Sequence record: NC_042116.1
Strand: one strand, 5' to 3'
Length of the DNA stretch: 64,000 nucleotides
The translations under genes and the position numbers were made by a program. The first letter of the stretch is position 1. The number at the start of each line of letters is the position of its first letter. The notes under the pieces are model-generated. The model saw only the letters and a list, made by a program, of their open reading frames with translations, had not been told where the DNA came from and made no database searches. Shown piece after piece: positions 1-6,568 of the stretch.

Positions 1-100
1 CTATAGATGGATAGACTTCTGGCAGTAAAGATGTTCAGATGGATAGACGTATAGACCTCCATACATCTAGATGGATATGTGTCTGGACGTTTAGACGGCT
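1..100. repeat. Short direct repeats at the probable genome end
   Basis: AGATGGATA at 5, 37 and 69 (exact 32-bp period); TAGAC/TGGAC at 12, 44, 52, 84, 92. Confidence 0.7.
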
Positions 101-282
101 AAACCGATTTTAGTCTCGATTTTCCATTAGTTCCCCTTCCGCGTCTAGAAAGTTCTAGGCAGAATCGAAAGTCGTCTTTTCGTGTTGACAGAGCTATATT
201 ATCAAATGGGGTTAATGATTGCAAGGACTTTTTTCAATAAAAATAAATTTGACATCTGATTATATAATGTAGTACTATAGTA

Positions 283-332
283 TCAATCCAGCGAAATGGA
301 CTAACCCTATAGGGTGCCGAGATCCGCCTATT
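283..332 (+). ncRNA. Two-hairpin element E1 (candidate small RNA)
   Basis: tcca-GCGAAA-tgga ctaa accc-tata-gggt; behind TTGACA(249)-18-TACTAT(273). Confidence 0.55.
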
Positions 333-364
333 AATATATAAAAGCGAATGAGAATCATTACTAA

Positions 365-413
365 TTATAGTTATATTCCCGCACCCTCTAGGGTATCCGA
401 TTTCTCTCGTCTG
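365..413 (-). ncRNA. Two-hairpin element E2
   Basis: Minus strand cga-GAGAAA-tcg, accc-taga-gggt; promoter TTGTAT(447-442)-17-TATTAT(424-419). Confidence 0.5.
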
Positions 414-658
414 AAATAATAATATCAAAGTACCGAATAGAATACAAGGATTATTTTTGATTTTTATGAAAATAGTTCAAATCGATTTATACGTATAAAG
501 GAAAGGATTTAAAAGGCGTACAAAAAAGCGGGGTGAATGTATAGCAGTACTATAGAAACGCCGTGTAATGGTTCCTATGCATTGTGGTGGTATGAATACG
601 CATATAAAGGAAAGAAACTTATATAAGGAAAGTATTTGCAATGAATGAAAGAAAGTAC

Positions 659-686
659 TTGCAAAGGTTTAAGGTTATGATACTAT
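659..686 (+). promoter_or_regulatory. sigma70 promoter with extended -10
   Basis: TTGCAA-16-TGn-TACTAT, A-rich upstream, AGTACT overlapping the -35. Confidence 0.7.
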
Positions 687-706
687 CTATTTCGCCAACA
701 AGGAAA

Positions 707-718
707 CGCTCTTTAACA
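707..718 (+). promoter_or_regulatory. boxA antitermination element
   Basis: CGCTCTTTAACA matches the rrn/lambdoid boxA consensus; about 15 nt after the predicted start site. Confidence 0.65.
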
Positions 719-788
719 ACTTACCGGATGATTACTTGATAGTGATTCTTTACTTTAGAAATAAAGAAAAAGAAAAACGATAAAGTAC

Positions 789-816
789 TTGACGGCAAGA
801 AAGGAAAGTGTAGAAT
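789..816 (+). promoter_or_regulatory. sigma70 promoter
   Basis: TTGACG-16-TAGAAT, AGTACT overlapping the -35. Confidence 0.7.
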
Positions 817-820
817 GTTG

Positions 821-969
821 GTTATCGAAAGGCGGTCAGGTTCGCCGTATGATAGGTAAGGGTAACAGGGCAGAATACAGTACTGTTACAGAGTAGCCAG
901 AAGTGCTACTACAGCCTTATAAAAAGCTAACTAACAGTTAGTGACCTATTTACCGCCTAACGATATAAC
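821..969 (+). ncRNA. Candidate ~150-nt multibranch structured RNA
   Basis: Nested helices 821-827/961-969, 830-836/952-958, 852-857/944-949, 858-861/915-918, 862-868/883-889, 893-897/905-909, 927-932/936-941; starts at the predicted start site; no ORF. Confidence 0.55.
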
Positions 970-1001
970 GAAAAAAGTTTCTAAGAAGTTGAAAAAAGTA
1001 C

Positions 1002-1031
1002 TTGACTGATAGAAGCAAAACATAGTACGAT
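1002..1031 (+). promoter_or_regulatory. sigma70 promoter for the first gene
   Basis: TTGACT-18-TACGAT, AGTACT overlapping the -35. Confidence 0.6.
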
Positions 1032-1082
1032 GTATCCAAGCCAAACGGCTAATATAACCTAAACTTTTAAGAGGAATTACAA

Positions 1083-1736
1083 ATGACTACTACTAACACT
1101 GCAAAAGTATCTCGTGTAACTTTGAACTCAATCATTTTCGCCACTGCTCCAGTACTGGCAGCACCAGCCGAAGGTGAGACTCACAGTAAAGAAGTAATTG
1201 CACAACACAAATCGTCAATTGCTGAATTTGTATCAAATCAGGGTAAAGAGTTGGCTGGTTTTATTTTGGGTAAAGTTGAAACGCCTGATTTGATTATCGC
1301 GATTATCAAAGAAGCGGCGAAACAAATTCCAGCAGTACAAAAGCAACTGGCAGATGAAGCGGCAGTAATTGCACTTCAAGCAGAAGAACAGCGTGTTAAA
1401 GATGCTGAAGCGGCTGAATTGAAGCGGAAACAGGATGAAGCAGCATTGCAAGCTGAAAAAGACAAAATGCTTAAATTGTTAACTGACGGCGGTTTAGATT
1501 TGGCAATCGCTCAAACAATGGTAGCGGCTGGCCTTAAAGCAAAAGCTCCAGCTAATTCACCAAAAAACAGTTATGAGCGTGTCGCGGTAACCGTTGACGG
1601 TAAAGGCTACGATGTTCCAGTGCGGGGCAACATGAGCGAAGAATTGAAAGCTCTGGTAGCTAAAGATGGCGGGGATCGTGATGCATTTATCGCAAAATAC
1701 CGCAACGAACCAGCCGCACAAGAAGTTACTGAATAA
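1083..1736 (+). CDS. H-NS-like protein (divergent)
   Basis: RBS GAGGA; coiled coil then LLTDGGLD..AAGLKAK..PKNSY..G.....LK..V...G..RDAFIAK, paralleling the H-NS linker and C-terminal domain by eye. Confidence 0.55.
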   Translation: MTTTNTAKVSRVTLNSIIFATAPVLAAPAEGETHSKEVIAQHKSSIAEFVSNQGKELAGFILGKVETPDLIIAIIKEAAKQIPAVQKQLADEAAVIALQAEEQRVKDAEAAELKRKQDEAALQAEKDKMLKLLTDGGLDLAIAQTMVAAGLKAKAPANSPKNSYERVAVTVDGKGYDVPVRGNMSEELKALVAKDGGDRDAFIAKYRNEPAAQEVTE

Positions 1737-1884
1737 TATCTCAGTACTGTAATAATAGGGGGCAAACCAGCCCCCTAAGCCGTTCTAATAGTATTTTAAT
1801 ACTAACGTGTTATAGTACTATTAGAAACGCTTAAAAGTCTTTATAGAGCGTTTTATCTTATATCTTAAGTAAGGATAAACGCTT

Positions 1885-2154
1885 ATGCAATTAACCCCAA
1901 TATCTAATTTAATTGATAAAAATACTCGCATCGCTAAAACGATGACAGCCATTAGCAGAACAACATCGGTTTTTAATGGTTATCTTGCTTTTGTTGTTAA
2001 TGGTGAATTAGTACAACGTAGGATCTATGACATGGCATATAATAGTTTATATGATTCGTGTATGTATATAGTTCACAAGAAAGTTAATTATGCCGTTAAT
2101 CTTCCCTGTAAGCCTATTAGCGGAGCGTTTAACGCTGAATCACTAAAGGCATAA
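1885..2154 (+). CDS. Hypothetical early protein
   Basis: RBS AAGGA, followed by a terminator. Confidence 0.6.
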   Translation: MQLTPISNLIDKNTRIAKTMTAISRTTSVFNGYLAFVVNGELVQRRIYDMAYNSLYDSCMYIVHKKVNYAVNLPCKPISGAFNAESLKA

Positions 2155-2164
2155 GGTAACATAA

Positions 2165-2200
2165 AAAGCCCGTTAGAATAGCTCTGACGGGCTTTTTTTA
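2165..2200 (+). terminator. Rho-independent terminator
   Basis: gcccgttag/ctgacgggc stem followed by a T-tract. Confidence 0.8.
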
Positions 2201-2209
2201 TTTGTTGAA

Positions 2210-2242
2210 AGTACTTGTATTATAATCTCAGTACTGTATAGT
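2210..2242 (+). promoter_or_regulatory. Repeated early promoter cassette
   Basis: TTGTATTATAATCTCAGTACTGTA at 2215, 3477 and 4603; near-identical inverted copy at 3404-3432. Confidence 0.75.
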
Positions 2243-2276
2243 AACCGTTATCGAAACAACTGACGGACACAACAAA

Positions 2277-2939
2277 ATGAATGCATTTAAGTTAGAGCAG
2301 TATAGAATGACTTTGGAAGTACTGGAACAAATGAAAGATTGTTTAGACCGTGGCGAGACTTATACCACTGTTAAAGGCAAGCCGTTCAACGTTACAAGGC
2401 AATTCGGTATTTGCTGGCACGTGTACGCTCATACGCCTAACCAGAACGTGACAGGGATCGGCACTGACTTTATGTGTCCTGCTTTTGCTGATATGGGCTT
2501 AGATATAGCGTATCCGGTGGAGTGTCAAACAACTGGCAGCCGCGATCAAATGCGTCAGGCATTCAGTGTACAGCGTAACATGTATGACGACAACACGATC
2601 CACGGTGCAAACCGGATCAAGCTGGTGGATTCACTGATCCAGTACTACCGCGAAAAGATGGAAACGCCGATCACTGTTACCATGTATGAACATTATTACA
2701 ATCAAGCCTTGACAGAAATGAAAAGGCGTGATTCAGCTAATGAAGCCGTATGGGATGTTTTGGATTTTGAGAACAATCAGATCTGGCGTGAACTGGCGTT
2801 AAAGATTGTTGACGAAGATCCTACACTGTCAGAAGTGGATCACGCTGCTGGTATTAACTACCCTGATGATCTAACGTTGGAAAATGTAGTTACTACTAAC
2901 TTACAGGAACGAATCCGCGAAGCATTAGAAAAGTTATAA
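2277..2939 (+). CDS. Hypothetical early protein
   Basis: 220-aa ORF with its own promoter and RBS. Confidence 0.8.
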   Translation: MNAFKLEQYRMTLEVLEQMKDCLDRGETYTTVKGKPFNVTRQFGICWHVYAHTPNQNVTGIGTDFMCPAFADMGLDIAYPVECQTTGSRDQMRQAFSVQRNMYDDNTIHGANRIKLVDSLIQYYREKMETPITVTMYEHYYNQALTEMKRRDSANEAVWDVLDFENNQIWRELALKIVDEDPTLSEVDHAAGINYPDDLTLENVVTTNLQERIREALEKL

Positions 2940-2950
2940 TCTTTACAAAT

Positions 2951-2986
2951 AAGGGGTTGACGGTTCAATCCCTTTTATAGTACTAT
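2951..2986 (+). promoter_or_regulatory. Fused terminator-promoter cassette (also ~3246, 4481, 9137, 9751, 11188, 11595, 12111)
   Basis: GGGTTGAC-loop-GTTAACCC-TTTT type hairpin carries the -35; the -10 follows the T-tract. Confidence 0.8.
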
Positions 2987-3017
2987 GTAATCACACCAAA
3001 CGAAAGGGGTTACATAA

Positions 3018-3233
3018 ATGAGATTAAGTGAGATTAGAAAAGTACTGAAGGAACTTAACAAGCTGGCGAAAGAATCGGGGAACCTCGATCCAGATATTAA
3101 GTTTTGGAGTGATGATATGGACACTGATTTACTATTAGAACTTTGTCCTGCTGATGATCTCAGTGATTCAGTACTGAAAAGCGGTAATATTCAAATAAGA
3201 TTGAATGAAGTACTTAACCCAAAAGTTAGATAA
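3018..3233 (+). CDS. Hypothetical early protein
   Basis: Own promoter and RBS. Confidence 0.7.
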   Translation: MRLSEIRKVLKELNKLAKESGNLDPDIKFWSDDMDTDLLLELCPADDLSDSVLKSGNIQIRLNEVLNPKVR

Positions 3234-3285
3234 TCTTTACAATTGCGGGGGTTGACAGCCTCCGCTTTTTTATGGTACTATAATA

Positions 3286-3336
3286 TCAATCCAGAGAAAT
3301 GGACTAACCCTAGAGGGTGCCGAGATCCATCTATAG
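3286..3336 (+). ncRNA. Two-hairpin element E3
   Basis: tcca-GAGAAA-tgga, accc-taga-gggt; promoter TTGACA(3252)-18-TACTAT. Confidence 0.55.
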
Positions 3337-3349
3337 AAAATTTAGTCCT

Positions 3350-3398
3350 TAATAGATATAGTTCCGCACCCTCTAGGGTATCCAATTTCTCTTGTATA
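3350..3398 (-). ncRNA. Two-hairpin element E4
   Basis: caa-GAGAAA-ttg, accc-taga-gggt; promoter TTGTAA(3432-3427)-17-TACAAT(3409-3404). Confidence 0.5.
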
Positions 3399-3532
3399 TA
3401 AGTATTGTACAGTACTGAGATTATAATTACAAGGGGTAAACAGAAATAAAAATTAAAATTAAAACGAAAAAAGAACTTGTATTATAATCTCAGTACTGTA
3501 CAATTCTCTATATCGAAAACGGGAGAAATGAT

Positions 3533-3988
3533 ATGAATTCAAAACAGTTCCAAGATGCAACAAGAGAAACATTTTTAAAGTACTTTCCTCATGGTCACAT
3601 AAGCATTTCTATGTTGGCAATAGGTGGTGGTTGTAATATCTTTTGTGGCTTGATTGGAGACATTAATGATGTAGGTGGTAAGATCCGCATGAATGATCCT
3701 GTAACGGTACGGGCTTATATTCATGATAACTTTTCATTTAATGATGAAAGTACTGAATTGGAAAACGTTGTTATTGAGTTCGATGGTTCGTGGATCTCAG
3801 TACTGCCAGACAATCCGCATCATTATTGTCAATCCCACAAGGTGCCAAGTCGCAAGATTAACGCAGAACCTAAAAAGGCATTAAGTAATTTGGATAAGTA
3901 CTTTAAACGATTAAAGGACTGTGTAACAGAGCAAGCAGGATTAAATCGCATTATTCAGCAGGATAAGATCCCAGCGAAATATCTATAA
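3533..3988 (+). CDS. Hypothetical early protein
   Basis: Promoter and RBS GGGAG. Confidence 0.8.
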   Translation: MNSKQFQDATRETFLKYFPHGHISISMLAIGGGCNIFCGLIGDINDVGGKIRMNDPVTVRAYIHDNFSFNDESTELENVVIEFDGSWISVLPDNPHHYCQSHKVPSRKINAEPKKALSNLDKYFKRLKDCVTEQAGLNRIIQQDKIPAKYL

Positions 3989-4063
3989 TATATTGTCAAA
4001 AGTACTTGCATTGTATAAGCGAGTACTTTACAATAAGTTATCGTTAATTGAGAGGATTCGAAT

Positions 4064-4474
4064 ATGTTACATGTTAAAGGTTTTTCTGAGGGTGGTTATT
4101 GCTTTATGATTGGTGATAAGCCTGTTTCTGTTGTTGAAGCATTGCAGAAAAATGGTAAGAAATTTAACAAGAATACATTAAACGCTTTAAATAGAAATAA
4201 TCTTGCTAATGAAAGCGATCTTGTGTCATTTGAGTTACAAGTACAATCATTACATAAAGGATTAACACCTGAATATGTAATTCAAATTTTACGCAATGAA
4301 TATAATATTGATTTTAATAATGATTTTCATGAGTTAAGTTCTGCCAGCGTACTGGATTTATTAACAGTATATCATATTGCACAATATCGAGCACCCTCAC
4401 CATGTAATCGTGATGGTTCGCCAATGCGTTATTTTTACCAGTACTTACAACGCTTCATAGAAAAGAAAAAATAA
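4064..4474 (+). CDS. Hypothetical early protein
   Basis: Promoter and RBS GAGG. Confidence 0.75.
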   Translation: MLHVKGFSEGGYCFMIGDKPVSVVEALQKNGKKFNKNTLNALNRNNLANESDLVSFELQVQSLHKGLTPEYVIQILRNEYNIDFNNDFHELSSASVLDLLTVYHIAQYRAPSPCNRDGSPMRYFYQYLQRFIEKKK

Positions 4475-4520
4475 TCAAATAAGGGGTTGACTTCGGTTAA
4501 CCCTTTTTGCTATACTAATA

Positions 4521-4570
4521 TTACTCCAGAGAAATGGACTAACCTTATAAGGTGTATAAGTGTACCTATA
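4521..4570 (+). ncRNA. Two-hairpin element E5
   Basis: tcca-GAGAAA-tgga, acct-tata-aggt (compensatory change); promoter TTGACT(4487)-18-TATACT. Confidence 0.55.
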
Positions 4571-4662
4571 ATAAAATAATTAAAATTCATACAAAAAAGT
4601 ACTTGTATTATAATCTCAGTACTGTATAATTCTTTATATCGAAAACAAACGAGGGTTTTTAA

Positions 4663-5085
4663 ATGAGAACATGTAAAGAGTGTGGGAACAATTGCAACGT
4701 ATTATCTAATGGTGTTGTCCATCATTACAACGAGGATGATAAAATTGATTATGATCTAGATGGGGATCATGTTGCAATACCTGAATTATCTGATTCTGAA
4801 AACAACATGTTAAATCCAATTCTTCAAAGTACTTTTAATTTTAATGGTGATGTTCCTTGTATTAACTACGCCGCGAATGGTGGAGGTTATGAAACTTACC
4901 AGTACTTCATTTGTGCTGATGGTGGATGTTTAGGAATTGGAACAGTAATTAATGAGTTTCATAAAGTAAACTTTAATGATCCTGATGATAAACAATGGCA
5001 CATTGTAGGGGTTGACGTGAATTATGAAAATACTAATCTGATAGATGATCACACAGGGGATTATATACCAGTAGCATATAGTTAA
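4663..5085 (+). CDS. Hypothetical early protein with N-terminal CxxC
   Basis: Promoter and RBS. Confidence 0.75.
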   Translation: MRTCKECGNNCNVLSNGVVHHYNEDDKIDYDLDGDHVAIPELSDSENNMLNPILQSTFNFNGDVPCINYAANGGGYETYQYFICADGGCLGIGTVINEFHKVNFNDPDDKQWHIVGVDVNYENTNLIDDHTGDYIPVAYS

Positions 5086-6446: not shown

Positions 6447-6568
6447 AAGTAATAATACAGTATTTTGATATACGTGTCAAGGATTAAATTAAAATTAAAA
6501 CAAAAGAAAGTACTTGCATTAAGTATGAAGTACTGTATAATCTTTTATATCGAAACGGGAGAATTAAA

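Follow-up and report, generated by a model that had tools for sequence, protein, structure and literature searches.

What kind of RNA lies ahead of the first protein gene at the left genome end of Yersinia phage fHe-Yen9-04, and on which molecule does selection act there? The DNA analysed, referred to below as the window (the whole stretch of 64,000 nucleotides (nt) from record NC_042116.1), is identical in sequence to bases 1–64000 of this phage, a 354-kb jumbo myovirus of the genus Eneladusvirus, and constitutes the left end of its genome. Bases 1–1082 carry no gene, and the first annotated gene, g001, begins at 1083 in the list of open reading frames (ORFs). A preliminary description of the region proposed a multibranch RNA of about 150 nt at 821–969, closed by pairing of its own ends, and interpreted it as a dedicated non-coding RNA or a conformational switch that is expressed first on infection. 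The present study finds that 824–965 is a selected, evolutionarily conserved plus-strand RNA structure, which matches no described RNA family and, judging from the comparison of homologs, is a new RNA family of ~142 nt with seven covarying helices. Its most likely role, which we propose tentatively, is that of a closed 5′ leader domain of the early transcript from promoter P1.

Results

Fold of the leader RNA

Coordinates throughout are those of the window, plus strand, and the helices P1 to P7 are to be distinguished from promoters P1 and P2. Positions 823–836 and 952–965 form an inverted repeat of 14 nt with 86% complementarity. The sequence 821–969 was predicted to fold into a closed multibranch structure with a minimum free energy (MFE) of −46.2 kcal/mol, against a shuffle mean of −32.1 kcal/mol (z = −4.13), and 0 of 200 shuffled sequences were as stable. 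Seven nested helices and a mini-hairpin of 2 bp with a UUCG loop make up 824–965, as listed here together with the variation observed among the phages and with a competing hairpin.

824–965, plus strand: structured RNA domain of ~142 nt, its own 5′ and 3′ ends paired (MFE −44.8 kcal/mol, z = −3.65)
823–827/961–965, plus strand: helix P1; 823:965 is U-A, U·G, or C-G among the phages, and 824–826/962–964 are invariant
830–836/952–958, plus strand: helix P2; GAP32 has C-G for U-A at 836:952, and CBB has G·U at 834:954
837–850, plus strand: 14-nt bulge between helices P2 and P3; 12 of the 14 positions invariant in nine distinct sequences
839–846, plus strand: predicted mini-hairpin GG-UUCG-CC inside the bulge, pairs 839–840/845–846, without variation among the sequences
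851–857/944–950, plus strand: helix P3; 857:944, here U-A, has become A-U in five sequences, and 852:949 and 851:950 vary to G·U
858–861/915–918, plus strand: helix P4, which closes the P5/P6 junction; 860:916 occurs as G-C (four sequences) or C-G (five sequences)
862–871/880–889, plus strand: hairpin P5; in GAP32 and CBB, 865:886 is G-C in place of A-U, and in XbC2, 863:888 is A-U in place of U-A
~891–897/905–912, plus strand: hairpin P6; double changes at 892:911, 894:909, and 895:907
919–924, plus strand: single-stranded junction J4/7; invariant UUAUAAA at 917–923, which extends into the 3′ arm of P4
925–931/937–942, plus strand: hairpin P7; 925:942 is A-U or G-C, and the A-U pair 929:939 is U-A in the Erwinia and Serratia phages
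822–855, plus strand: alternative local 5′ hairpin, a rival of helices P1, P2, and P3 (−11.6 kcal/mol, z = −2.7)

Helices P1, P2, and P3 together form a long irregular stem, in which a 2×2 purine-rich internal loop parts helix P1 from helix P2 and the near-invariant 14-nt bulge interrupts the stem before helix P3, which closes a three-way junction with P4 and P7. In the single-sequence MFE structure of the window, helix P3 is exchanged for a rival pairing of 5 bp; however, helix P3 is 6–7 bp long in every homolog and covaries at 857:944, and this comparison of homologs is the reason that we prefer it. Hairpin P5 has a variable loop and an invariant upper part (GGGC / AGUACUG), the loop of hairpin P6 is GNRA-like in several homologs, and that of hairpin P7, UAAC, is invariant. 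A further pairing, between 882–888 in the 3′ strand of P5 and 932–938 in the loop of P7, is lost in GAP32 and CBB and was dismissed as a coincidence.

The seven nested helices of the preliminary description are thus present, each with covariation, and the closing helix it had proposed, which paired the 5′ region with 952–969, is real at 823–836/952–965. Its outermost GTT/AAC pairs (821–823/967–969) do not stand: they precede the proposed transcription start at A824 and are unconserved, for which reason the RNA domain is taken as 824–965. The higher GC content claimed relative to the flanks is also seen, at 0.43 over 775–924 vs 0.29–0.37 in the adjacent non-coding windows.

The preliminary description also noted a hairpin at 831–846 that competes with the closing helix. 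This hairpin is real and proved to be the upper half of the larger one at 822–855, in which a 3×3 internal loop separates a lower stem of 6 bp from an upper stem of 5 bp. Every prefix of up to ~125 nt is predicted to adopt it; it would form first, last until ~125–130 nt have been transcribed, and give way once the 3′ strand appears. Among full-length folds, those that retain it are at best 8.1 kcal/mol less stable than the closed fold, and helix P2 has an ensemble pairing probability above 0.99 at equilibrium. The 35 bases shared by the two folds are almost invariant, and the promoter-linked motif ATCGAA described below accounts for part of the invariance of the first 7–10 of them. The suggested conformational switch is a conceivable but improbable reading; at equilibrium the closed fold wins.

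Conservation and covariation

BLAST located the same stretch upstream of a g001 homolog in fHe-Yen9-03, six Erwinia pEa_SNUABM phages, Serratia phage BF, Erwinia phage Kaldavass, Xanthomonas phage XbC2, Cronobacter phage GAP32, and Pectobacterium phage CBB. The conservation set comprises nine distinct sequences from Eneladusvirus and Mimasvirus-type phages, a narrow clade. In the distant phages the element is 77–80% identical, with a range of 77–87% also recorded, vs 39–45% for the g001 protein, and the flanks do not align. Alignment with MAFFT followed by RNAalifold gave 47 pairs, and in 11 of these both partners vary. The covariance model built from this alignment found 12 loci at 140–179 bits, recovered every homolog, and added one phage contig from IMG/VR and one metagenome contig.

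When the nine sequences were aligned by fitting to the model, 95.5% of the cells could pair and 11 pairs were doubly changed, so that the pairings are indeed kept in the homologs. Sliding the partners by 1–3 columns left only 0–2 double-change pairs, and none of 500 shuffles reached the observed values. These counts were made on the model-fitted alignment; the MAFFT alignment, obtained independently, yielded 11 compensatory pairs as well, the same ones. Read clade by clade, the data require at least 11 separate double substitutions, with at least one in each of the seven helices. G·U pairs occupy 31 cells vs a single cell for A·C, which identifies the plus-strand RNA as the selected molecule and agrees with the orientation of the promoters.

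Conservation is not confined to the helices. Among seven representatives, 48% of the unpaired columns are invariant, and these lie in the bulge, in UUAUAAA of the junction, in the UAAC loop of P7, and in upper P5. Because such invariant unpaired bases exceed what a generic stabilizing hairpin would need, a specific partner or a tertiary fold is indicated.

In CBB, the terminal repeat annotated over 22 kb encloses the element, of which that phage has two copies; the covariance model detected exactly one copy, and no second, in the record of fHe-Yen9-04. A pattern scan of IMG/VR yielded five loci, among which only one phage was new. The corresponding scan of metagenomes yielded 87 loci, of which 86 were chance matches, with unrelated flanks, to GC-rich DNA of bacteria, which left a single real one (L063); no copy was found in the bacterial and archaeal genomes searched. 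A locus search in IMG/VR based on g001 returned Serratia phage BF only.

Promoters, start site, and 3′ side

The two promoters that the preliminary description placed on either side of the RNA, at 789–816 and 1002–1031, were both recovered. The features that bear on the ends of the transcript are as follows.

783–816, plus strand: early promoter P1 with the AAGTACTTGAC motif; −35 TTGACG at 789–794, 16-nt spacer, −10 TAGAAT at 811–816 (promoter scan, 10/12)
824, plus strand: putative transcription start, the A of ATCGAA, 7 nt after the −10
966–1001, plus strand: A-rich linker, terminator-less by scan, its sequence kept in homologs
1002–1031, plus strand: early promoter P2, TTGACT-18-TACGAT (promoter scan)
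1039–1050, plus strand: small hairpin AGCC-AAAC-GGCU at the putative 5′ end of the promoter P2 transcript
811–829, 2237–2255, 3499–3517, 4625–4643, and 6536–6554: five promoters with the pattern −10, 7 nt, ATCGAA

Promoters P1 and P2 are rightward and of the sigma-70 type, both carry the AAGTACTTGAC motif, which occurs 15 times in the 64-kb window vs 1.6 expected, and both are conserved in 10 of 10 aligned phages. In promoter P1, AAAGTACTTGAC and GTGTAGAATGT are invariant in all ten, and the AAAAAGT(A/C)CTTGAC of promoter P2 is invariant in all homologs. Promoter P1 resembles T7 A1, including an ATCGA start 7 nt past the −10. The combination of a −10, 7 nt, and ATCGAA recurs in the window, where five early promoters have it (6 matches vs 1.3 expected), and looks like a promoter-linked initial transcribed motif; the annotated start of T7 A1 is the A of ATCGAGAGGG, whose distance from the −10 is also 7 nt. 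From the spacing at the five promoters and the T7 A1 annotation, we infer that the promoter P1 transcript begins at A824. The 5′ end of the RNA would then be base-paired, since, given this start, 824–827 pair with 961–964, that is, within the 0–2 nt of the 5′ end that define a 5′-terminal stabilizer stem-loop of the ompA-leader type.

No intrinsic terminator, as a stem followed by a T-run, was found between 965 and promoter P2 in any homolog, and linker 966–1001 is probably a UP-type upstream region of promoter P2. Because no terminator follows, the domain would be the 5′ part of a longer RNA running into g001. The dedicated non-coding RNA of the preliminary description does not emerge from this arrangement, in which the element as transcribed belongs to a longer g001 transcript unless it is processed. 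Nor is the claim that it is expressed first on infection sustained, as further rightward promoter-like sites precede promoter P1, one at 249–278 and a weaker one of the AGTACTTG type near 654. By the same 7-nt spacing, the promoter P2 transcript would start at A1039, the first base of the small hairpin 1039–1050. This hairpin appears in the predicted fold of 824–1090; its stem AGCC/GGCU is kept and its loops differ in the Erwinia/Serratia, GAP32, and CBB phages, and it looks like a second 5′-terminal hairpin in front of g001.

Directly after the domain, GAP32 and CBB have a 22-nt insertion with an extra hairpin, CUUUC-GUAC ... GUAC-GAAAG (L008:984-1013 and L009:984-1013, respectively), which is not a terminator on this strand because A's follow it instead of U's. 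AGTACT occurs hundreds of times in the 64 kb, in coding and non-coding sequence alike, and is found in the −35 flank of early promoters and in hairpin P5. CAGTACTGT occurs 14 times in the window vs 0.46 expected.

Known RNA classes and coding potential

Searches against Rfam 15, which took in 6S RNA, Y RNA/YrlA, self-cleaving ribozymes, riboswitches, and pRNA, gave no match on the element at E ≤ 10 for the window or E ≤ 5 for four homologs. ARAGORN found no transfer RNA (tRNA) or transfer-messenger RNA in 1–5000, and helix P7 and the mini-hairpin are without T-loop or anticodon-loop geometry. The view that the element is not a tRNA and belongs to no recognized family is thereby upheld. A hammerhead-like reading of the junction of helix P2, the mini-hairpin, and helix P3 was rejected because the junction lengths and sequences do not fit.

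The absence of an ORF was confirmed as well. A small coding ORF was rejected since stops occur in all frames and the homologs differ by indels of 1, 2, and 5 nt that shift the frame. For the same reasons, the short coding sequences annotated over the RNA in Kaldavass (L006:796-885 and 951-1088), GAP32 (L008:881-1054), and CBB (L009:760-948), which differ in frame and strand and are unconserved, are not credible and are probably annotation artefacts.

The expression platform that a riboswitch or cis-regulatory leader of g001 would couple to its aptamer, a terminator or sequestration of the ribosome site, was not found: the region has no terminator, a promoter in between, and no conserved pairing with the g001 ribosome site. 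An anti-Shine-Dalgarno role was suggested by J4/7, which is partly complementary to the g001 ribosome site here, but the best duplex is a different one in every homolog. A free-standing small RNA gene with its own promoter and terminator has its promoter and lacks its terminator, which leaves release by processing as a possible route. RNase III-type geometry, taken as a coaxial duplex of ~20 bp with a central asymmetric internal loop, was set against the local hairpin, with 11 bp and a 3×3 loop, and against the rod of helices P1, P2, and P3, with 19 bp and the 14-nt bulge.

The first gene and its surroundings

Two features of the downstream region are relevant here.

1083–1736, plus strand: g001, the first protein gene, 217 amino acids, downstream of both early promoters (ORF list)
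2163–2204: strong intrinsic terminator after g002, with a 15-bp stem and a T-run (terminator scan)

The g001 protein falls into PHROG 20181, whose function is unknown, and gave no Pfam match and no sequence match in PDB; a reading of it as H-NS-like was unsupported by Pfam, PHROGs, and PDB sequence searches. Full-length homologs of g001 were found only in phages that carry the 142-nt RNA. Munch, SE_PL, 7t3, PHA46, Kae01, and Hallingskeid match only residues 106–206 of g001 or a shorter C-terminal part, and there the shorter leader element is found. Directly after the terminator at 2163–2204 comes the next promoter of the AGTACTTG type, and such a terminator-promoter cassette is typical of an early-region layout. 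A second non-coding block, 86–342, is 77–78% identical in GAP32, CBB, and Kaldavass and holds promoter-like sites and a CCCTATAGGGTG-type element; the DNA between this block and the RNA is unconserved.

Discussion

The domain at 824–965 is, as the likeliest of the readings weighed here, a closed 5′ leader domain of the promoter P1 early transcript, although we give this assignment less than even odds. Host RNA polymerase would transcribe from promoter P1, and the domain would form the very 5′ end of the early messenger RNA (mRNA) of g001, possibly together with g002. The first bases, AUCG, would pair with CGAU ~135 nt downstream, helices P2 and P3 would add the long irregular stem, and this stem would close a multibranch core of five hairpins. 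Closed in this way, the domain could hide the 5′ end from the decay pathway of RppH and RNase E that depends on it, and might keep a 260-nt untranslated leader folded on itself, so that the leader neither interferes with the downstream promoter or the ribosome site nor offers a landing site for Rho. In Escherichia coli, stem-loops at the 5′ terminus are established stabilizers of mRNA, which they protect from decay that depends on the 5′ end. The domain probably also binds a specific protein, given that about half of its unpaired bases are invariant, and cleavage within the A-rich linker may release it as a stable RNA, ~145 nt long, that persists.

Several points weigh against a leader domain of this kind. 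The start at A824 is itself inferred, and the papers on fHe-Yen9-04, fENko-Kae01, and fEgEco12 treat no promoters or transcripts. A simple hairpin would be enough to protect a 5′ end, so the elaborate core and the invariant loops suggest something more specific. Promoter P2 yields g001 mRNA without the domain, which limits any effect in cis to part of the mRNA pool, and the other early transcripts of the window that start with ATCGAA have short, unstructured leaders.

The main rival is a free-standing, trans-acting small RNA, which we regard as possible but doubtful, released by RNase E or RNase III or by unseen termination and titrating a host or phage protein early in infection. A defence sensor, a ribonuclease, RNA polymerase, and the g001 protein are its conceivable targets, to be named with the same reserve. 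The closed stem of 5′ and 3′ ends is typical of stable processed RNAs, the element is conserved far more strongly than the adjacent protein gene, it has a strong promoter of its own while the gene is served by the second one, and the single-stranded A-rich linker could be an entry site for RNase E. The invariance of half the unpaired bases suits this explanation as well, as does the co-occurrence of the long RNA form with full-length g001, where phages with only the C-terminal half carry a different, shorter element. PA5oct provides a precedent, for the leader domain and the small RNA alike, in the abundant non-coding RNAs made from its terminal repeat (PMC7318152). Set against these points are a missing terminator, the failure to find conserved complementarity to the g001 ribosome site, and the occurrence of the element as a single copy in a narrow clade only. 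We consider unlikely the further idea that the domain, cut from the first early transcript, serves in trans as an RNA-only decoy for host takeover or anti-defence, made in the first minute and sequestering a specific host protein, for example a defence sensor, a ribonuclease, or RNA polymerase. If that were true, its functional counterparts would be the shorter elements that T7-group phages and jumbo phages of the Munch/RaK2 type carry at the corresponding position, and early leader decoy RNAs would be a general and overlooked phage strategy.

We consider it less likely still that the element is a co-transcriptional device, either a kinetic switch between hairpin 822–855 and the closed fold or a put-like RNA that remains bound to its own polymerase and changes pausing or termination downstream. 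The 5′ hairpin, predicted for prefixes up to ~125 nt, must yield for the domain to close, the 35 bases that serve both folds are almost invariant, the location just after an early promoter is that of put in HK022, and a strong terminator does follow g002 at 2163–2204. However, the closed fold is better by 8 kcal/mol with helix P2 formed almost completely, antitermination is not obviously needed where every early gene unit is served by a promoter of its own, no covariation bears on the alternative fold, whose bases are invariant, and part of the invariance of the first 7–10 bases is explained by the ATCGAA promoter motif. An element acting at the DNA level, such as a protein site, a replication or packaging signal, or an upstream activator of promoter P2, with an incidental RNA fold, appears very improbable. 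Its position inside the terminal-repeat region in CBB, its several invariant segments, and the huge genome-wide over-representation of AGTACT, which is present in hairpin P5, could be taken that way, but a site in duplex DNA would need none of the compensatory changes that occur in all seven helices, and 31 G·U vs 1 A·C cells mean selection on one transcribed strand. That the fold arose by chance in a conserved promoter region and has no function is scarcely credible: there are only nine distinct sequences from closely related lineages, but against this stand z = −4.1, the 11 double-change pairs vs 0–2 in slid controls, and better conservation than that of the adjacent coding sequence.

Early leader regions of phages are usually read as promoter clusters only. 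Here selection on the stretch between two tandem early promoters is stronger than on the first protein gene, and what it acts on is RNA pairing. The family represented by 824–965 could be added to the catalogues of RNA families, and the domain offers a concrete target for experiments on what jumbo phages that rely on the RNA polymerase of the host do to protect their first transcripts or to exploit them.

Comparison with known systems

Several described phage RNAs share features with the closed leader domain proposed here. The pRNA of phi29 is, like it, non-coding, ~150 nt long, and encoded at the left end of the genome behind an early promoter, with paired 5′ and 3′ ends and a multi-helix core. 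In contrast to pRNA, the present RNA has no complementary pair of loops for ring formation, as the P5 loop varies and the UAAC of the P7 loop is partnerless, and it has no Rfam match; pRNA is known only from phi29-like podoviruses. PA5oct, a distant relative within the same broad jumbo-phage clade, produces the abundant non-coding RNAs ncRNA001 and ncRNA002 from its terminal repeat, which RNA sequencing showed to be high from early infection onward (PMC7318152). The terminal-repeat origin and the early, high transcription are points of likeness, whereas the PA5oct RNAs are larger, at 236 and 451 nt, have no described structure, and gave the covariance model at best 16.8 bits, on short hairpins.

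The put RNAs of HK022 are likewise structured RNA just past an early promoter, and the present domain could similarly act on its own polymerase. They consist of two stem-loops with a total of ~70 nt, located right after the early promoter, which bind RNA polymerase in cis and suppress terminators; the situation here is different in that each early unit has its own promoter. The RNase III signals of T7, such as R0.3, are also structured elements between early promoters and the first gene, and hairpin 822–855, with its lower stem, internal loop, and upper stem, has UAUGAUA on its 3′ side, as in the R0.3 region of T7 and IME15. Classical RNase III substrates span about two helical turns, while the local hairpin here has only 11 bp and the stem of helices P1, P2, and P3 is broken by the 14-nt bulge.

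Leaders with comparable architecture occur in other phages. Munch, fENko-Kae01, Hallingskeid, and RaK2-type phages have in common with g001 no more than its C-terminal half, which is likewise preceded by two tandem promoters, and between these lies a shorter, different element, which in Kae01 is predicted to fold as a closed three-way junction (z = −3.6). The shorter element includes a hairpin block of ~40 nt, with a AAGUAGACAGCC-stem and the loop UAAGUCAUACGAAA, which BLAST showed to be common to T7-group podoviruses and several jumbo myoviruses, at these positions.

T7, L109:165-212: ~40-nt hairpin block
IME15, L107:479-526: ~40-nt hairpin block
fENko-Kae01, L010:2108-2160: ~40-nt hairpin block
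Hallingskeid, L012:2040-2090: ~40-nt hairpin block
RaK2, L108:762-812: ~40-nt hairpin block

In each phage this block occupies the leader stretch that separates the first of the tandem early promoters from the second (A1 and A2 in T7), its stem shows a compensatory change from CCUG/CAGG to CCAG/CUGG, and it has no Rfam match. The covariance model of the 142-nt domain, run with filters off on the PA5oct terminal repeat, RaK2, Kae01, Hallingskeid, T7, and IME15, found nothing convincing; its best match on a true candidate, 11.4 bits with an E value of 0.07, was the inter-promoter element of Hallingskeid.

The closest parallel in design is the A1 leader of T7. It too begins at a strong host-type promoter at the left end, with a second tandem promoter of the A1/A2/A3 cluster before the first gene (0.3), and the first bases transcribed are AUCGA, likewise 7 nt past the −10. 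The A1 leaders of both T7 and IME15 are predicted to form a terminal stem on AUCGA, a 2×2 purine loop, and a second stem. They differ from the present RNA in that T7 has a 36-nt hairpin and two more hairpins where fHe-Yen9-04 has a 142-nt element with a seven-helix core and invariant loops, and no sequence homology is detectable past the first 10 bases. Because the covariance model, which misses T7, detects no homology, the likeness to T7 and IME15 is one of design and not of family membership. We know of no established function for the T7 A1 leader hairpin. The resemblance in promoter, start sequence, and closing stem, together with the separate hairpin common to T7-group phages and other jumbo phages, nevertheless suggests that 5′-closed leader domains may be a design common to unrelated phages, for which T7 could be a tractable model.

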